DNA of 64,000 nt from Chlorokybus atmophyticus (Eukaryota; Plantae; Mesostigma and Chlorokybus algae), in contig RHPI01001037.1 of assembly GCA_009103225.1 (NCBI GenBank), positions 1,340,916 to 1,404,915 of the forward strand. The letters are read 5' to 3'. Position 1 is the first letter of the stretch. Each line of letters opens with the position of its first letter. The notes under the pieces were generated by a model. It had not been told where the DNA came from, made no database searches, and worked only from the letters and a program-made list of their open reading frames with translations. The position numbers and the translations under genes are program-made. This document shows positions 5,311 to 63,186 of the stretch, in pieces.

Positions 5311-6268
5311 TCTCAAATCATATACTTGTATACAATAGTTTTTTTTGCACGTACTCACATAAACTGTATGGTACAAATTGCATGATGTTAACAAGCCCAT
5401 AATGTCGACAACCCATTACATATTCGGCAATGCTAGATATTTTAGATAGGTCGTTGACGTGGCTCATGACAAGTAGTCACACGAGCGCAAGCGGTAAGCA
5501 CATAAATTATATGCTCATCGTTGGAAGTGCCTGTTATGCATGTTAATCTATATTATACGCCCTGCCCTACCCTTTTTGCCTATCGTATTTTGCCGACACC
5601 CCCCCACCCCTCCCCTTACAACAAGCCCCCATTGATTAGGGGGGGGGGGAGGNGTAACAAATATGGTACATGCTTGAGCCTATGCTACCTTTACTTACAA
5701 GGTACATACGATATTATTGTACATGTGTCATACCAAAGATGCAACGGGGACTTTCGCACTGATCAGTATTGATACAGAGGCCCAGAGTGCAAGCAGACAC
5801 GGATTTGCAAGTGCGAAAATCCTCGTATCATCTTTCTGTATCAACACTATCAGTGTTGATAAAGAGGCCCATATTGCAAGCAGATATTGCGAGTTGCTCT
5901 TTGTGTCTACTCGATATGCAGCGCTATTGTGCATGATAGTGCCACTTCGACATACCACACATGTCATTGACAACATCAATCTGCAATACACCACCACCTC
6001 CGTGCCAACATGCACTATTTGCGTGCAGCATTTCAAACTGTAAGTTATCTTAAGCTCCAAGGTGCCGCACCATAGCAGTGCTTTGCCTATGCCTATGCTA
6101 ATGCCTGCAGCCATTTGCGTTAAAAGTCCGTTGATGGCTATTACGAGTCTTAATGTCGCAACTCATTAGTAGCCTCACCTTGGCAAGCCCGTTTAGATGC
6201 ACGTCCAGCCATTACACACTGATCTGAATGGGCAATTCCCTTCTGCATTTATTGTACATCATGTACAC

Positions 6269-30386: not shown

Positions 30387-31387
30387 GCGACGGCCATGCG
30401 ACGGAGCACAACTGAAATGGTGACTGCGAGAACTGACGGAGTCCACACCCTACTCTCTGTACTGCGCTACCGCTTGCTCTCTCCCCTCCCGTAAAACAAT
30501 AAGCACGCCCTGGAAGCTGCCGAGCACACTGCCGTCACCGCCGCCACCGCCGCTGTGCAACTGCAGCTGCGCCACTACGATCGCGCCGCTGAATCTCAAG
30601 CTTACGTGTGCCTTGCCAGTGTACTTTGCCACGGATGCAGTTTAGCCGATACCTAAGGTGTCTTTAACACTCAGGGTGTCTTAAACACAATCCAGCAGTG
30701 CTCAATACCAGACTTGTATTTCGCATAAACAACATAGCCTACACTGTATAGGCTTACTGGTATCTGTAGCCCAGATGCAAAAGTATGATGATACACACAT
30801 GCAGTACATTGCTGACATGTACATCCTAAAGCAATACATGTGTATGAACATGTGTTGCATATGTGGACTTAAACGTAAACATTGCTCATAATAACGCTTA
30901 TAGTAACTTACGATCCTTGTTAATTTTAGCAAATAAAAAAACAGTCAATTCACAATCATCACGATCAGAAGCAACAATCGACAAAACCTACGTTGCAATT
31001 GTATAACACACAACAGTTTGATTCGATTACATAATAAATAGGATGACATTCAACTCAAAATTAACTTAGGTGCTGAAATTGTACGCAGGTAGCGCATATC
31101 ATGCGCTATGCGTTTCAAACAGGCGCACGGTGCGTAGAAACTTGACGAGTTTGTAAAAATCGTGTAGTCATAAAAACTTTAAAGCATTGCTCATCAAATA
31201 ATATACTTCGCCAATAATTATTTGAATAAGGCCTTAAACTGCATACACTTGCCATTTCAAACCTCAAACTCACGCATGTGTGTCAATAGATAGCTGCACA
31301 TTTGCTTTTAAGCTCAATTATTAAATACAATGCAACAGCAACAACTTGACCTGAAGACGATAATAATGATGCATCACTCTCATCCAT

Positions 31388-32362
31388 TGTAACGATACCA
31401 CTCACTTACTTGCTGGGCGGCTTGGCAAACTTATGCACAAGCACAAGGACTTACTACTGGAAGCCCTACCAGCGTCACTGGTGCAGTACCTTGCAGAGGA
31501 AGTCACAGCACCGCACCAAGGAAGGAGAGGATGACACCAACCTCTCTACTCAGCTCCCACACACTCACACACTCAAGCACACCTCACACACATGTGCAAA
31601 GCTGCCACGAACATCACACCCCACATGGGATGAGAGGGAGAGCCCCTTGAACAACTAAACTAGGCGCCCCACACACAAGAGTCGAGTATGCACATGCTGA
31701 GCTGCCTCAACACATGTTGAGGCCGTTCATATACCCTCTCTTTGCTGCTCTCCGACCCAGAACATCCAAGTCCAAGGCTACATGCCTTGTCATGGCTGCG
31801 TTGACCACAACTCATGTCTAGGGCTGCCACATCAGCCCATGGACCTCTTTCAACGCCCAAGACTTACACATCAGCCTCGGACATCACACACATCATCATT
31901 TGACGTTGTGAACGTCCTTGGCTGGTCACATCAGCCTAGGACATCATACTCATGCATACATATGCATCCTTATGCATACATATGCGCGCATATGCACACA
32001 TATGTGCGTGCATGCATATACATGCATACATCTAGTACATACCTCTCATGCACGCATATGCACTTATATGCGTACATGTGCACACATATGCAAACACATG
32101 CATACACATGCGGACATATGCACACATATGTCTCTGTACATCACATGATGTCTCATCGGCTATGATCAGCCCTGTGCTTGCCATCATGCCTTGTGTAGTT
32201 CATCATGCTCAAGGCCGCACATGCTCTAGAGCAGACGTACATGAGAGCACACCCACAAGCACTACACACGCTTGCGTAATATGGGTCCCCATTTGGTCTC
32301 ATCTTACTTACCACATAAGTAAGGGTCAGAGAATGACTTTTGCCTGCCTTGTGGGCGTGACA
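31388..32362 (-). repeat. 3' LTR (975 bp)
   Basis: Near-identical to 35866-36882. Confidence 0.95.
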
Positions 32363-32614
32363 TTCCTCCCCACTTGCATTGCAACGACCGCGTTGCAAAA
32401 GGGTGGGACACTAGTCCTGCACAAACCGCAGCCAGGCTGGCGAGGCCCAACTGAGTGGCAGTGCTTCACGTGAAACTGGTGCAAGTCGTGGGAGTGACAA
32501 CCAACTCTGATACTGTGTACCAGTGCATGCGGGGTTGGTATGTCACATGAAGATGCTGTGGGCATGTGCACATGCTCATACACGCTGAGCACTAGTAGCT
32601 CTGAGCACACGCTC

Positions 32615-33142
32615 TCAAGTGGCACCTGTGGATTTGAGCTCATTCTCAAACTCCTCCAACAAGGCAGCACAGTTTGCCAAGTTGGTTTTCGGCTCCCAGG
32701 TGTTATGCTCTTCGCCATAACCAAGCCACTTCACCAAGTACTGGATCCGAAAGTTCTTCTTGTACTTTAGGAACCGTTTGCCAACAATGGCCTCGACCTC
32801 ATATTCGAGATCGCCCTCAACCTCAACTGGAGGGGGAGGGGGTTGTACTGGACCGTCACTCTTGTACTGTTTCAGCAGTGCTACATGAAACACATCATGT
32901 ACTCGCATGCTCTTCGGCAAGTCAAGCCGAAAGGCACGGTCACCAACACTGTCCGTGATGCGGAATGGACCCAGCCATCTTGGTAGCAACTTGCGTACCC
33001 CGCTTGTTTTGAGTCGAATGTTCTTCGAGCTCAACAACACTTGATCTCCAACTTGGAGCTCATCTCCAGGCCTACGTTGCCTGTTGGCATACATCTTTTG
33101 CCTGTCTTGTGCTGCTCTCAAGCAATCTTTTGCATGTGCCAA
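32615..33142 (-). CDS. Integrase C-terminus (GPY/F module) plus chromodomain
   Basis: KLLPRWLGPFRI...VHDVFHVALLK; YEVEAIVGKR...QYLVKWLGYGEEHNTWEP. Confidence 0.92.
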   Translation of the reverse strand: MAHAKDCLRAAQDRQKMYANRQRRPGDELQVGDQVLLSSKNIRLKTSGVRKLLPRWLGPFRITDSVGDRAFRLDLPKSMRVHDVFHVALLKQYKSDGPVQPPPPPVEVEGDLEYEVEAIVGKRFLKYKKNFRIQYLVKWLGYGEEHNTWEPKTNLANCAALLEEFENELKSTGAT

Positions 33143-33157
33143 CGAGGCATGAATGCT

Positions 33158-33688
33158 CTATGTGAAGTCTCTAGCCATCGGCACTTTGCTGAATGGCTCG
33201 ACATTCAGAGACATGGGTGTCAACACATGACGACCGTAGTTCAGATAGAAAGGAGTGCTTCTTAGCGACTCATGCCATGCATTGTTCACAGCGAACTCAG
33301 CAAGTGGCAGGTACACATCCCAATCTCTGTGACCACCTCCACACGACCTTTCACGCAACAGATTAGTGAGAGGGGCAACACGCGATGAGTAACCCAGAAT
33401 GTACTTGCGGAAGTGGTTGCTCAAGCCTAAGAATGCGCGCAGCTCGTGCACATTCTTGGGACTAGGCCAATCCTTGACCTTGGCAACCTTCCTTGGGTCA
33501 GGGCGCACGCCCTCCTTGCTCACAATGTGCCCGAGGAACTCTAGTTCCTTCTTGCCAAACTCGCACTTGGGCATGTAAGCATAGAAACGGTGCGCACGCA
33601 GCGTTTCCAACACCTCGCGCACTTGCGCGACGTGCATGTTAGCATCCTTGCTGAACACAAGTATATCATCAAGATATACAAGCATCAT
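33158..33688 (-). pseudogene. RT C-terminal half fused by deletion to distal integrase
   Basis: VYLDDIL...KCEFGKKELEFLGHIVS...LRAFLGLSNHFRKYI...APLTNLLRE jumps directly to RDWDVYLPLAEFAVNNAWHESLRSTPFYLNYG; RNase H and the integrase HHCC/DDE core are missing. Confidence 0.88.
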
Positions 33689-33739
33689 AGTTTAAAAGGT
33701 GGCTGGCGCATTCGTCAGACCACAAGGCAGCACTTTATA

Positions 33740-35509
33740 CTAAAAGTGTCCCACAGGCGTTTTGAACGCTGTCTTGGGCACATCTTCCGGTGAAATCTGA
33801 TGGTACCCAGTGATGAGATCCAAGGAGCTGAACACTGAGGCACCGCTCAGTTGATCAAGCAAATCATCTATCCTTGGCAGCGGATACCTGTTCTTGATGG
33901 TCAGCTTGTTCAAGGCCCTATAGTCTACGCACATGCGTAGCCTGCCGTCCTTCTTAGGTACGAAAAGAATGGGTGCTCCGAAAGAAAAGCTACTTGGCTC
34001 AATCAATCCCTTCTCAAGCAAGGCCTTGATCTGCCCCTCCATGTCCGCATACTCTGCTGGACTCAGTTTATACACAGGTCTGAACGGAGGCTGCGCATCA
34101 GACTCTAGAGGGATCGTATGCCAGACGTCCCTCTCAGGTGGCAATGCAGGCAGTTCAGCTTGAAACACATCAGAAAATTCAGACAACAGACCTTCAAGGG
34201 TCGTGTCTGGTGGCTTGCCACCGGTCTCACCAACTGAGGTGGAAGTGTCGTCGTTGCCGACTGGCCGGACGAGCACTAGAAGAGGTTGAGCTCCATGGTG
34301 AACAGCCCTCTTCACCTGCATGGCACTCAATAAAGAACATAAGACATCTGTACTTGATGCATCATCAACAGAGCTAACAGTGAGCGCAACATTGTGCCCA
34401 TCTGCATGCAAGGTCACACGACCTCGACCTTTGCGAACACTGCAAAGTTTTGTGTCCGCATCTGTGCGTAAGCCACATGCTTGCTCCCAGTGGCTGCCAA
34501 CAATGACATCCACACCTGGCACCTCTACTGGAATGACCAAGAACTTGAGCTGAGCATGATAGCCTTGCATACGCACAGTCAAGCGTACAACTCCCCGCAC
34601 GGGGATCTCAAGCTTGTTCAAGGCAACAACCGTGTCATCACACTTGCTGACACGAATGCTTAAGCGTCGCACAAGAGATTCACTCACGAAGTTCTCAGGT
34701 GTGCCCATGTCTATCATCAAGATGCACGGCACATGCGCAACAGAAGCCTTGAACAACCAAGTCAAGTTCAGAGTACTTACCTCATGGATGGCAGGGGGGT
34801 CATACAACACACGCATCTGCCCCTTACCTAGCTTGACCTCTCCCAGGACCTGCATGACTTTAACAAAGCGGGTCCACAACCCAGGACGCTTGGGTACAAC
34901 CACGCATGCACTTGTGTTGTGCGCACTCTTGCTCTTGCAATCCACATAGTGCTTGAGCATGTTTGACAGCTCGTCAACAGGTGCATTAAGCAAGAGACAC
35001 TTGCCCGCACAGTCGTGCTGCATGCATTGAGTATCTACCTGTACACCCAACTCGTTCTCCCACACAGCGACATTACGTGGTTGGGGAAGGCGTGACATCA
35101 AGTCACTGAAAGCACATTGCGTATCAACGTCCACAGAGCAACTAGCCATTGGCAATCCCTGATGTATACATGGGTTCTTGCTCTCTTCATGTCCCTCATA
35201 CATGAGAGCATGGCCCCGAGCAGCATCAGCTTCAGCTTCACAGAGCTGTGCTTCACGGCTAAGCTTACGCTCTCGGTGGTTCTGTACAATTGCATCAACA
35301 GATGCACCAACATGTCCTTTACTTGGGATTGCACAGTCAACGATGTCACTTGACCGTTGCCATTGAGCTATGTTGGCCTCGTGTTGTTGCTGTAACTCTG
35401 TTACCTGCTCACACAACGTGGCAACCAAAGTGGTAAGCTGTCGAGTGGTCTTAGCGACATCATGGCTCCAAGATACCTCCTCTCTTGCTGTATGCTCTTG
35501 CTCAGCCAT
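33740..35509 (-). CDS. Truncated gag-like N-terminus, Dam-like segment, aspartic protease and RT N-terminal half
   Basis: Degenerate protease [15 protein letters not shown] motifs PFRPVYKLS...[60 protein letters not shown]; the frame breaks after GHF. Confidence 0.88.
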
Positions 35510-35865
35510 TTCCACAAAGGTTAGGGCCAACACCACAAAGTGAGGTCCCTGTAACAGATGCACTCACGCGCACACGCGCGCACACACGCGCACACGCGCA
35601 GCTGGTGCAGCAACAAGCCAATGCGTGTGTAATGCTGTGTATGTGCAGCAAGAACACACAACTAATGCTCAAATCAGCGTGTAGAACGACCCACACCGTG
35701 CATGCAAGTGTGCACGCAGCTGGACGCACCAACTAGCATGCACAATCAGCTCAAAACCCTGCCATTTAGTGCGTGCAAGCAAAGAATGCAATGCACGCAC
35801 GGTGCAGCAAGTGCATGAGCTGATGGGCAAGCATGCAAGGCTTGGAATGCAAGCTCCGAGTCCAA

Positions 35866-36882
35866 TGTAACGATACCACTCACTTACTTGCTGGGCGGCT
35901 TGGCAAACTTATGCACAAGCACAAGGACTTACTACTGGAAGCCCTACCAGCGTCACTGGTGCAGTACCTTGCAGAGGAAGTCACAGCACCGCACCAAGGA
36001 AGGAGAGGATGACACCAACCTCTCTACTCAGCTCCCACACACTCACACACTCAAGCACACCTCACACACATGTGCAAAGCTGCCACGGACATCACACCCC
36101 ACATGGGATGAGAGGGAGAGCCCCTTGAACAACTAAACTAGGCACCCCACACACAAGAGTCGAGTATGCACATGCTGAGCTGCCTCAACACATGTTGAGG
36201 CCGTTCATATACCCTCTCTTTGCTGCTCTCCGACCTAGAACATCCAAGTCCAAGGCTACATGCCTTGTCATGGCTGCGTTGACCACAACTCATGTCTAGG
36301 GCTGCCACATCAGCCCTTGGACCTCTTTCAACGCCCAAGACTGATCACACATCAGCCTCGGACATTGTAAACGTCCCTAGGTTGGTCACATCAGCCTAGG
36401 ACATCACACACATCATCCTTGGACGTTGTGAACGTCTTTGGCTGGTCACATCAGCCTAGGACATCATACTCATGCATACATATGCATCCTTATGCATACA
36501 TATGCGCGCATATGCACACATATGCGCATGCATGCATATACATGCATACATCTAATACATACCTCTCATGCACGCATATGCACTCATATGCGTACATGTG
36601 CACACATATGCAAACACATGCATACACATGCGGACATATACACACATATGTCTCTGTACATCACATGATGTCTCATCGGCTATAATCAGCCCTGTGCTTG
36701 CCATCATGCCTTGTGTAGTTCATCATGCTCAAGGCCGCACATGCTCTAGAGCAGACCTATATGAGAGCACACCCACAAGCACTACACACGCTTGCGTAGT
36801 TTGGGTCCCCACTTGGTCTCATCTTACTTACCACATAAGTAAGGGACAGAGAATGACTTTTGCCTGCCCTGTGGGCGTGACA
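35866..36882 (-). repeat. 5' LTR (1017 bp)
   Basis: Near-identical to 31388-32362, with one extra 39-bp internal unit. Confidence 0.95.
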
Positions 36883-37797
36883 TCCATGATGCGTGAGATA
36901 ATGGCCATCATTTTTTTAACATCATGTACACAATATTTATCATCGTGCAAATGCAAGCATTGTGCAGCATTGAATAACGATCATTGCACAAGAGGTGCAT
37001 GTTACCGCTCACATGCAATGCAGCACGCATGCTGCGCCTTGCGGGATGCCACGCGCAACATGCACGCAATAAGTAGTGTTTTAATTGGCGGTCTTAATAG
37101 GCATGTGGCTCTTATGTATTTGCTCGATAGCTTTACACAAGATAATGATGAACCCTTTAAAAAAAAAAAACATTTACACAATTTGATTGATAAAGCCACA
37201 AAACAACCCAAAAACTAATCACATGCACATCGTACTGATGCTTGCACAACCTGTTGGCTTTATAACTTCACATGTTGTGGAGCAAATGTGGCATCCGATT
37301 GAATGCTTCGCAGAAACACGAGTTGCTGCATTTTAGCCTGACCATCACAATTGCGACCACTGCAATTGCGCATTGCCTCTACCGGCCATGGCCAATGGTG
37401 CAGTCAGGGCTGCGCATCGCCGTTGAGCGCGTTGGGCGCACAGATTTTGAAATTCCGGCTCGGCGGGAGAGGCGAGCGACGGCGGCGACGGTGGTGGCGG
37501 CGGCTGGGTGGGCGAGCTGGACGGCGTGGCCGGGTGTGTAGGGTGGCTTGGGATTGAATTTGACGGTAGCCACGTGTAGGGGTTGCCTTGCCGTCGGCTT
37601 TGGGTGCAGGAGAGAGAGGGTCGTTGCCTCTTGTGTCCAGGGGCAGGGGCCGGGCATGAGGCGGAGGAGAGGCGCAGGCATGAGGACCAGGGCACCGCCG
37701 CCTGCTGCCTGTCGTTGTGGACAGTGGCAGACGGCGTGTTAGCTGGGGGAAGCAGAGAGCCTTCCACGGACAACGGGCGGCTTGTGCTTCGGGGGTT

Positions 37798-37920: not shown

Positions 37921-39593
37921 GAGAAGGAATAGGAGCAGGACCAGAACCAGAACCAGAACCAGGAGCAGCAGGAGGAGGAGAAGGAGGAGGTGTTGGTGGT
38001 GAACTCAGCCCCGGGGTGATTAGGTTCACGCACCCGCTGGCTTCGCAGAGCGTTAAGGCCATCGCCTTCAACGCCTACGCGAGCAGCGTCAGGACAGGGC
38101 TTAGGGCAGCCTATGCCAATGCTGACTCCGGCCCTGAAGCCTTAGCCGAAGTGGAGAAGCTCATAGGCGTTCACTGGGCCGAGCTGCCCCTGTCACAAAA
38201 GCAGCCCTTTATCGCCCAGGTTAGTGCACGTTTTCTTGGTTTACTTTGTGCATGTGCATGTATGCGTGCATGTCACTTTACACCAGAAAGAGTTGAGTAG
38301 TACCCCCCCNNNNNNNNNNNNNNNNNNNNNNNNNNNNNNNNNNNNNNNNNNNNNNNNNNNNNNNNNNNNNNNNNNNNNNNNNNNNNNNNNNNNNNNNNNN
38401 NNNNNNNNNNNNNNNNNNNNNNNNNNNNNNNNNNNNNNNNNNNNNNNNNNNNNNNNNNNNNNNNNNNNNNNNNNNNNNNNNNNNNNNNNNNNNNNNNNNN
38501 NNNNNNNNNNNNNNNNNNNNNNNNNNNNNNNNNNNNNNNNNNNNNNNNNNNNNNNNNNNNNNNNNNNNNNNNNNNNNNNNNNNNNNNNNNNNNNNCACCC
38601 ACACCCACACACAAGTGTAATGGGTATTGCTTATGGACTGGTGGTGGTGTGCGGCAACGCATTGTAATATCAATATGGTTGGGTCACGACAAGTAACTTG
38701 ATGCCTATTATACCAGGCGCGATCGGATAAGGCAGAGTTTTTCAGGCAGAATGGGTGGGTGGGCTCAACAGATGCCATCGACAATGCCGTGCTCGCTATG
38801 GGTGATGATGGCACTGTTGAGTTGGTGAAGCGCAAGCGCGGTCGGCCTCCGAAGCTTCGAGAAGACGGTACTGCTGCGCCCGCCCCATTATCATCCTCTG
38901 TGCCACGAAGAAAGGTGCATGTGCAACATTGTGGTGACTACGTAACGATTAGACAACACTTATCAGCTTTCACATCAAGTAGTTGCACTGTTGCACTGTC
39001 TGCGTGCTGAAGTGTGCGTTGAGCATGCATCGATGGCGCTGCTTAGAGTGGTCAATATTGTTATTGGAAGCTCATGTGCTTGCAATGCACTATGGTCTAG
39101 CTGTGTACCATTCACATGTACTGTGATGTATATCAACAGATTTTGGGTGCAATGTTCAAGAATGTTGGGGTCACTTGCACATGACAGTATTGTCATTTTC
39201 TTGTGTACGTCAGACAAATCACTGTCAAGTTGTTACTTCATCAATTGCTTGCTCATCATTGAAGCTGAAACATTGTTTCATGTGCAGTACAAGGCCCGCG
39301 TGAAGCCAGCGCAGCAGGCAGCGGAGGATACCAATGTAATCGGGACGCAAGTGGACGGCATTGTGGACGGCATCTTCGACGTTGGCTTGTTCATCACGGC
39401 GAGAGTGGCCGGCCCATCCGGGCAGCCGATTGTGCTTCGTGGGCTCGTGTTTCGCCCCGATGTTGCCACGCCCATTGACACCCCCAATGGGCTGTGCAGC
39501 CCTTCGCTCCAGAATGTCCCGAACGTGTCGGTGATCACAACAATGTCACAATCTGGCGAGCAGCCACAGCTGGAAGCTGAGTTGCAAATATAA
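37812..39593 (+). CDS. Chromatin protein: HMG-box-like domain, AT-hook and C-terminal 'V.G.VDG.FD.G' domain; model spans an N gap
   Basis: AFNAYASSVRTGL...EVEKLIGVHWAELPLSQKQPF (HMG-like); KRKRGRPPK (AT-hook); VIGTQVDGIVDGIFDVGLFITARV...LRGLVFRP (motif shared with plant ARID-HMG and MNM1-type AT-hook proteins). Confidence 0.72.
38310..38595. other. Assembly gap (N run)
   Basis: Run of n. Confidence 0.99.
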
Positions 39594-40641: not shown

Positions 40642-40657
40642 GGGGGGGGGGGGGGGN

Positions 40658-62995: not shown

Positions 62996-63186
62996 NNNNN
63001 NNNNNNNNNNNNNNNNNNNNNNNNNNNNNNNNNNNNNNNNNNNNNNNNNNNNNNNNNNNNNNNNNNNNNNNNNNNNNNNNNNNNNNNNNNNNNNNNNNNN
63101 NNNNNNNNNNNNNNNNNNNNNNNNNNNNNNNNNNNNNNNNNNNNNNNNNNNNNNNNNNNNNNNNNNNNNNNNNNNNNNNNNNNNNN

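Follow-up and report, generated by a model that had tools for sequence, protein, structure and literature searches.

Retrotransposons that carry DNA methyltransferases

A May 2026 preprint described 'DAM-LTRs', Ty3/Gypsy retrotransposons with long terminal repeats (LTRs) that captured a DIRS-type Dam methyltransferase domain at least four times (bioRxiv 10.64898/2026.05.21.726589). These elements include a chromodomain-bearing clade from Chlorophyta, and their Dam copies were inferred to have been captured from DIRS elements (bioRxiv 10.64898/2026.05.21.726589). Here, a segment of this type is analysed in the streptophyte alga Chlorokybus atmophyticus, within a window of 64,000 nucleotides (assembly GCA_009103225.1, contig RHPI01001037.1, positions 1,340,916 to 1,404,915 of the forward strand) whose own numbering is used throughout. 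Window positions 31388–36882 very probably hold one old, non-autonomous chromodomain Ty3/Gypsy insertion, in which the segment under study is the dead remnant of a PF05869-type domain belonging to the element's family. The kind of element is already described, as DAM-LTRs, and this copy is a decayed member of it. Two points may be new: the occurrence in the streptophyte Chlorokybus, and the lack of a usable NPP[FY] motif in most of the relatives.

In the preprint, the Dam domains of eukaryotic transposable elements are truncated, with an almost universal Asn-Pro-Pro. DAM-LTRs were associated with hosts that encode AMT1, and their absence from Metazoa and Streptophyta was cited in support; streptophytes were reported to be without abundant N6-methyladenine (6mA) and without AMT1. 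The underlying screen used hmmsearch with a Dam model at E ≤ 1e-5 (bioRxiv 10.64898/2026.05.21.726589). Neither Chlorokybus nor Mesostigma nor Klebsormidium is found in the preprint's supplement (bioRxiv 10.64898/2026.05.21.726589), and a literature search on Chlorokybus and 6mA returned no paper.

The Chlorokybus element resembles the DAM-LTRs in being a chromodomain Ty3/Gypsy LTR element with a short PF05869-type Dam domain in its polyprotein, and its relatives share the order Dam, protease, reverse transcriptase (RT), RNase H, integrase and chromodomain. It differs from them in its host, which belongs to a group scored as being without DAM-LTRs. A further difference is that Pfam fails to detect the domain of the window copy or of its nearest relatives. 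Moreover, a degenerate motif IV is seen in this copy and in most of the relatives retrieved, whereas Asn-Pro-Pro is almost universal in the preprint's set.

The DIRS tyrosine-recombinase retrotransposons that carry a methyltransferase have the same short Dam-like domain family. Unlike these, the window element has direct LTRs, a 5-bp target-site duplication, a remnant of a DDE integrase and a chromodomain, and no tyrosine recombinase. Gypsy-DNMT3 and other retrotransposon-borne cytosine methyltransferases (de Mendoza et al. 2018, PMC5890265) offer a looser parallel: there, too, a polyprotein carries a captured DNA methyltransferase, and charophyte/streptophyte algae are again among the hosts. 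The enzyme of Gypsy-DNMT3, however, belongs to the C5-cytosine DNMT family, occupies another position in the polyprotein and has another origin (PMC5890265).

A Dam-like domain upstream of the protease

A single minus-strand open reading frame (ORF) of 607 residues, 35563..33740, carries the Dam-like remnant at residues 148–258 together with a protease and the N-terminal part of an RT, so that a Dam-type domain and a Ty3/Gypsy RT stand in one frame, as in DAM-LTRs. The preliminary description of this locus, made from the sequence alone, had quoted a peptide HDCAGKC...MRVLYDPP. Its exact letters are found in the ORF at residues 183–257 (34793–35017), and the upper boundary proposed for the segment, 35090, falls within the remnant. 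The parts of the ORF that concern the domain are as follows.

35123–35563, minus strand: N-terminal 147 residues of the ORF (the 'gag remnant'), coiled-coil-like and without a zinc knuckle; the sole Pfam match is a weak one to Myosin_tail
34790–35122, minus strand: Dam-like (PF05869-type) remnant, residues 148–258, with a family-profile envelope of 148–260 and a well-matched core at residues 178–247 (34823–35032)
35054–35071, minus strand: VAVWEN, aligned with the xDACCN motif of relatives and lacking its conserved Asp
34976–34987, minus strand: degenerate motif IV, N-A-P-V, in the alignment column that holds NPP[FY] in intact relatives

The segment had been placed between a gag remnant and the protease. 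The second half of that placement is right, as an aspartic protease (Pfam Asp_protease_2/RVP_2, residues 273–360) follows immediately downstream. The first half found no support: the coiled-coil-like stretch upstream, residues 1–147, gave no detectable gag homology, and the gag ORFs of the relatives L001 and L003–L005, used as tblastn queries, found no match better than E 0.2.

When residues 120–400 of the ORF were compared by phmmer with 1.84 billion representative proteins, 258 matches were obtained at E ≤ 1e-3. Query 60–130, which is the Dam-like segment, was the best or sole matched stretch in many of these cases. Matches to the segment alone include P0036 (E 2.9e-10, one stretch, query 60–128) and P0042 (E 5.4e-10). 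Of the 150 matches listed, 134 contain this domain, usually with a protease after it; in many Ty3/Gypsy polyproteins it forms a unit of about 150 residues that immediately precedes the protease. A query-free profile of 75 relatives recovered ORF residues 178–247 at 89.3 bits (E 1.9e-26), and in a six-frame profile search of the window nothing apart from this segment scored better than E 0.7. The phmmer matches and the query-free profile score together identify the segment as a conserved domain.

The link to phage-type Dam runs through these relatives. PF05869 (Dam) is matched by 35 of 76 aligned domain segments, with a best E-value of 2.8e-11, and the gathering score is exceeded by P0036, P0050, P0028, P0014, P0038, P0091 and P0004. 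The protein P0036 bridges the two sides, since the window segment aligns with it at E 2.9e-10 and its own score against PF05869 is 39.5 bits, for a gathering score of 28.1. Full-length relatives (P0004, P0014, P0038 and P0091; 1324–1544 residues) read Dam (31–35 bits), protease, RT, RNase H and integrase; SH3 and Chromo domains were seen in P0004, P0038 and P0091, and neither was seen in P0014. The relatives nearest to the window copy (P0042, P0151, P0153 and P0082) have no PF05869 match, not even at E 0.1. A feature search of the ESM Atlas also returned a PF05869-annotated cluster.

Comparison with the phage enzymes supports the same identification. The relatives match approximately positions 19–114 of the 169 in PF05869 above the gathering score, and they share its layout of xDxCA, NPP[FY], a helix and hhhhP..W. 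The consensus of the family is ..FTxDACCxxxGxNxxCxxxxSPxxSFLxxDxxGxxVWLNPPxxxxxxxxxHYxxCKxxxPxxTSACxxVPxWxxxxW... and LLLNAPV of the window aligns with its VWLNPPF, at the place where intact relatives have hW(L/I)NPP[FY]. NAPV is therefore a degenerate motif IV, as the preliminary description had proposed. Unlike the phage domain, that of eukaryotic transposable elements covers part of the model, and the window copy additionally lacks the Asp and the motif IV aromatic residue and carries two deletions.

Transitively, through its relatives and the predicted fold described below, the window segment is clearly homologous to phage-type Dam (PF05869). The identity first suggested for it is thus upheld by way of the relatives; the direct comparison with Pfam methyltransferase models gave no match for the window copy, even at E ≤ 10 and with PF05869 included. 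The copy falls short of the preprint's operational threshold of E ≤ 1e-5 on this model and, as neither it nor its nearest relatives reach even E 0.1, a screen of the preprint's type would miss them.

The direct Pfam result could also be taken to mean that the segment is a mere gag–protease linker in which NAPV and the VVVP..W pattern arose by chance. Two further searches came back empty: residues 100–272 of the ORF found no homologue at E ≤ 0.01 among proteins of 334–1062 residues, the range to which that search was restricted, and the family profile found no PDB sequence at E ≤ 1. A linker would not be expected to be matched on its own at E-values down to 1e-10 or to be recovered by a query-free profile at E 1.9e-26, its relatives would not pass the Pfam threshold for Dam, and the structural matches of the segment and of a relative would not be methyltransferases. 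The chance explanation is refuted by the phmmer, PF05869, family-profile and fold results, and retains next to no probability.

Predicted fold

An AlphaFold model of the relative P0038 (residues 52–215; predicted local distance difference test, pLDDT, 86.5) has 15 matches in BFVD at E ≤ 1e-3. Nearly all of its viral matches are phage DNA N6-adenine methyltransferases, the best at E 1.7e-6, which assigns the intact relative to the class I (Rossmann-like) methyltransferase fold. Among solved structures, the best match of this model is the adenosine-N6 methyltransferase PCIF1 (6irx), with a weak Foldseek E-value of 4.5e-3 and a template modelling (TM) score of 0.51. The model of the window segment itself (pLDDT 78) also has PCIF1 as its best Foldseek match in the PDB, again weakly (E 0.017). 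The structural check proposed for this locus, AlphaFold followed by Foldseek, hence succeeded for a relative, whose model matches phage Dam models, and gave a weak answer for the window copy.

In an exhaustive structural alignment (VIA) of the window model, all of the 50 best chains were class I methyltransferases, with Z-scores of 6.3–8.0. KsgA (8.0), PCIF1 (7.8), T4 Dam (7.3) and E. coli Dam (7.2) were among them. Values of 7–8 are middling and within the range that this tool gives for common arrangements, so they are consistent with the Dam assignment and go no further.

These matches raise the alternative that the domain is an RNA adenosine methyltransferase of the PCIF1/CAPAM type, acting on the capped genomic RNA of the element instead of on DNA. 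PCIF1 leads the solved-structure matches of both models in Foldseek and has an NPPF-type active site; weak PCIF1_WW Pfam matches occur in 5 of the 76 domain segments (2e-3), and a PCIF1_WW cluster stands at rank 30 in the ESM Atlas search. The matches to PF05869 are both more numerous and stronger (35 members, best 2.8e-11), and among viral models the phage DNA N6-adenine methyltransferases outrank PCIF1-like proteins. PCIF1 itself acts on RNA caps and is much larger, with helical and WW domains, whereas the domain in question has no WW or helical cap-binding domain and little sequence-profile support for such kinship. Since no PDB sequence matches the family profile at E ≤ 1, PCIF1 may lead the fold searches merely for want of a closer solved relative. 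An RNA-directed enzyme of this type is accordingly judged very unlikely.

State of the domain in this copy

From end to end, the domain of this copy is colinear with that of a subfamily bearing NAP[FL] (L001, L003, L004, L005 and L007), interrupted by two deletions. The first removes about 9 residues in the N-terminal half and the second about 20 residues before the final V.V.YDPP strand. Positions 28–69 of the family profile are unmatched in the copy. At the xDAC motif, FDYDACCN of the nearest relatives is replaced by NVAVWEN (consensus LDACCN to VAVWEN), with loss of the Asp that in the xDxCA motif of PF05869 serves S-adenosylmethionine (SAM) binding. Motif IV, as NAPV, has no aromatic residue and does not conform to [ND]PP[YF].

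NAPV, the lost Asp, the deletions and the damage elsewhere in the element together mark the copy as a relic without activity. As judged from its sequence, the domain of this copy is catalytically dead and is predicted to be unable to methylate; each of the two deletions would have removed a strand–loop, one in either half of the domain. The view that the copy is decayed, with its SAM-binding part damaged, agrees with the unmatched profile positions, the altered xDAC motif and the two deletions. The further suggestion that the element methylates its own cDNA or target sites does not hold for this copy, given the same defects.

The surrounding retrotransposon

Matches to RVT_1 in two ORFs, together with SH3_Tf2-1 and Chromo, identify the element at 31388–36882 as a chromodomain Ty3/Gypsy retrotransposon on the minus strand. 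Its features other than those of the Dam-like segment are the following.

31383–31387: target-site duplication TCCAT, left copy, the identical 5 bases being present at both LTR outer ends
31388–32362, minus strand: 3' LTR in the element's sense, 975 bp, TG..CA, aligning with 35866–36882
32363–32376, minus strand: polypurine tract adjoining the 3' LTR, read from the sequence as CAAGTGGGGAGGAA on the minus strand
32615–33142, minus strand: ORF with the integrase C-terminal SH3 domain and a chromodomain (Pfam SH3_Tf2-1, E 2e-18; Chromo, PF00385, E 2e-18)
33158–33688, minus strand: ORF with the C-terminal part of the RT, YLDD kept, fused to the tail of the integrase core (RVT_1 positions 149–205 at residues 2–56)
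33755–33961, minus strand: N-terminal part of the RT, residues 535–603 of the 607-residue ORF (Pfam RVT_1 positions 1–97, E 2e-08)
34484–34747, minus strand: aspartic protease, residues 273–360 (Pfam Asp_protease_2 and RVP_2, each below its gathering score)
35853–35864, minus strand: putative primer-binding site, one base off the 5' LTR, TGGACTCGGAGC on the minus strand, with a presumed transfer RNA match
35866–36882, minus strand: 5' LTR in the element's sense, 1017 bp, TG..CA
36883–36887: target-site duplication TCCAT, right copy, a perfect 5-bp match to the left copy

The direct LTRs are 98.4% and 96.6% identical in two ungapped blocks, or 93.6% over 1023 columns when gaps are counted, and are flanked by a 5-bp target-site duplication, as in DAM-LTRs. 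The polypurine tract and the putative primer-binding site lie at the inner borders expected for a minus-strand element. The PF00385 chromodomain, which marks the element as a chromovirus, follows SH3_Tf2-1.

The coding part of the element is damaged at several places. The protease active-site triplet is DMG (34703–34711, minus strand) where relatives have DSG, in LMDSGAE, and this is an additional sign of a dead copy. The ORF stops at 33740–33742, and positions 98–148 of the RT profile are missing. In the translation of 33688..33158, the RT connection passes directly into W..LPLAEFAVNN..STPF, which is the tail of the integrase core. As RNaseH, Integrase_H2C2 and rve separate the RT from the integrase tail in intact relatives, this junction means that RNase H, the integrase zinc finger and most of the integrase core were deleted. 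The set of gag, protease, RT, RNase H and integrase needed for autonomy is accordingly incomplete, with no recognisable gag, a broken RT, and RNase H and the integrase core gone. The element is an old, non-autonomous insertion. With its DMG protease, interrupted RT and deleted RNase H and integrase core, this copy would be immobile on its own.

Several sequence features lie within or around the element. A CA/TG-rich, CACATACA-like low-complexity stretch within both LTRs (31782–32473 and 36419–37218) gives rise to long spurious plus-strand ORFs rich in H, T, Y and C, and a 42-base indel between the LTRs falls in this stretch (repeat spacing 4478 versus 4520). Assembly gaps (runs of N) are present at 1059–1233, 38310–38595 and 62996–63186, and single N letters at 5653, 40657 and 44540, that at 40657 being inside a long proline-coding CCN/GGN repeat. 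Host ORFs of at least 170 residues had no informative Pfam matches.

No further copy was found in the window by blastn self-search or by six-frame profile search. Contigs about 98% identical to the element were found in public runs X1 and X2, with no differing letters at the NAPV codons, and one diverged piece (about 83% identical) was found at 35002–35255 in public runs. In run X1, contig depth rises approximately 100-fold over the N-terminal RT stretch (33752–33993); depth there is also high in X2–X4, and the Dam-like part is at single-copy depth in those runs. The jump over the RT stretch indicates many diverged Gypsy RTs in these runs and, as that stretch alone is deep, the family appears to be low-copy at a nucleotide identity of at least 80%. 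No intact copy of the same family could be read from the public-run contigs, and none of the RNA runs among the public runs searched contained the stretch.

Motif loss and selection in the relatives

Among the 75 aligned relatives, 23 keep the canonical [NDS]PP[FYW] motif and a further 7 have NxP[FYW], although this set was fetched with a degenerate query, which biases the share of degenerate motifs upwards. Of 15 uninterrupted polyproteins of at least 1300 residues, 4 are canonical, 3 have NxP[FYW] and 8 are without a usable motif. The last are P0015, P0044, P0069, P0075, P0104, P0045, P0101 and P0115, whose domains have no [NDS]xP[FYW] at all. P0015 has a complete set of protease, RT, RNase H, integrase and chromodomain, yet no PF05869 match. 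A tree of the 76 domain segments, computed without the motif columns, shows nine changes of motif state in its best form, and well-supported branches force two changes; the window copy sits on a long branch with no supported placement. These counts suggest repeated loss of the catalytic motif in the family.

The positions that are near-invariant follow motif IV, in a helix and strand: Y, K, P, T, A and P of HYxxCKxxxPxxTSAxxxVP. Pairwise ratios of non-synonymous to synonymous substitution (dN/dS) in the domain are 0.24–0.37, or about 0.3, among the five NAP[FL] elements, all of them metagenomic, and comparisons with the window copy itself are saturated (dS > 1.5). The nearest relatives, L001–L007 from ENA and Logan metagenome contigs, belong to another family, the amino-acid identity being 35–42% for the domain and about 60% for the RT. 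In L001 (181–1146) and L003 (32–1015), gag has an ORF of its own, with a CCHC zinc knuckle, and the ORF after it opens with the Dam-like domain; the domain thus forms the N-terminus of Pol in this subfamily and lies outside Gag. The preliminary description had asked for a conserved NPPF or NAPF and for dN/dS below 1. A dN/dS below 1 was indeed found, in NAP[FL] elements of another family, while conservation of the motif failed in 8 of the 15 intact polyproteins.

The element's family very probably carries a phage-Dam-type domain of approximately 150 residues as the first part of Pol, immediately before the protease. Where relatives are intact and have hWLNPP[FY] and xDAC, the virus-like particle (VLP) would presumably contain the domain either as a part of the Pol precursor or cleaved from it. 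In the hypothetical model of the preprint, 6mA put by the domain on reverse-transcription products would let new insertions enter permissive chromatin (bioRxiv 10.64898/2026.05.21.726589).

One explanation of the domain follows this proposal: it would be an active adenine DNA methyltransferase in the host, writing 6mA on the element's own cDNA or insertion sites, where the chromodomain reads the chromatin, and the present copy would be a relic of it. Every one of the 23 canonical relatives keeps NPP[FY] together with the Asp of xDAC, and N-A-P-F and FDYDACCN are retained in the nearest subfamily. N-x-P-Y is the motif of the adenine-N6 methyltransferases Erm and KsgA, which would make NAPF compatible with catalysis. 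The window copy, however, has NAPV and no Asp, and the contigs of the two runs that are about 98% identical to it are the same at these codons; 8 of the 15 intact polyproteins have no usable motif.

Results from other systems are likewise divided. The enrichment of 6mA on DAM-LTRs in ichthyosporeans favours an active writer, whereas the assay of transposon-borne Dam enzymes in E. coli was negative and streptophytes are the group reported to be without abundant 6mA and AMT1 (bioRxiv 10.64898/2026.05.21.726589). The premise of the preliminary description, a host lineage in which 6mA is a known chromatin mark, is the reverse of what the preprint reports for streptophytes. With NAP[FL] in the nearest relatives and no canonical motif in most of the others, writer activity is doubtful for this sublineage, and the adenine-writer function that had been imagined for the whole family is doubtful there too. 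An active writer in Chlorokybus is considered unlikely.

Instead, much of this branch seems to keep the domain for something besides methyl transfer, as the sequence data suggest. Frequent loss of the catalytic motifs, combined with a near-invariant HYxxCKxxxPxxTSAxxxVP core and a dN/dS of about 0.3, makes a non-catalytic role likelier than that of a DNA writer. In such a role, the domain of the sublineage might bind SAM or nucleic acid, or be structural in the Pol precursor. It is tentatively proposed, as a possibility short of a probable conclusion, that Chlorokybus hosts a chromovirus lineage whose DIRS-derived Dam has diverged too far for Pfam and is a largely motif-less pseudoenzyme, kept in otherwise intact polyproteins under purifying selection for a new, non-catalytic role in Pol or the VLP.

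Several points weigh against the interpretation given here, in addition to the empty Pfam and PDB sequence searches, the modest structural scores, the retrieval bias and the narrow dN/dS sample mentioned above. Some of the short relatives may be pseudogenes. The comparisons with intact elements rest on relatives from other families and not on same-family copies from the host genome. Furthermore, activity has not been demonstrated for any eukaryotic transposon-borne Dam (bioRxiv 10.64898/2026.05.21.726589).

Implications for DAM-LTRs

The window copy is a dead relic from which no activity is expected, and its significance lies in the branch that it represents. Screens at Pfam thresholds miss this diverged branch of transposon-borne Dam domains. 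The missed branch may explain why Streptophyta were scored as lacking DAM-LTRs, and it weakens the reported association with AMT1- and 6mA-bearing hosts. That many apparently intact elements have no usable motif argues against methylation as the general function of the domain, and could help to explain the negative assays. If the domain is indeed a pseudoenzyme in this lineage, DAM-LTRs would be broader, and their link to AMT1 and 6mA weaker, than reported. In that case, the model in which elements write 6mA to look like active chromatin would fail for a large part of the DAM-LTRs.

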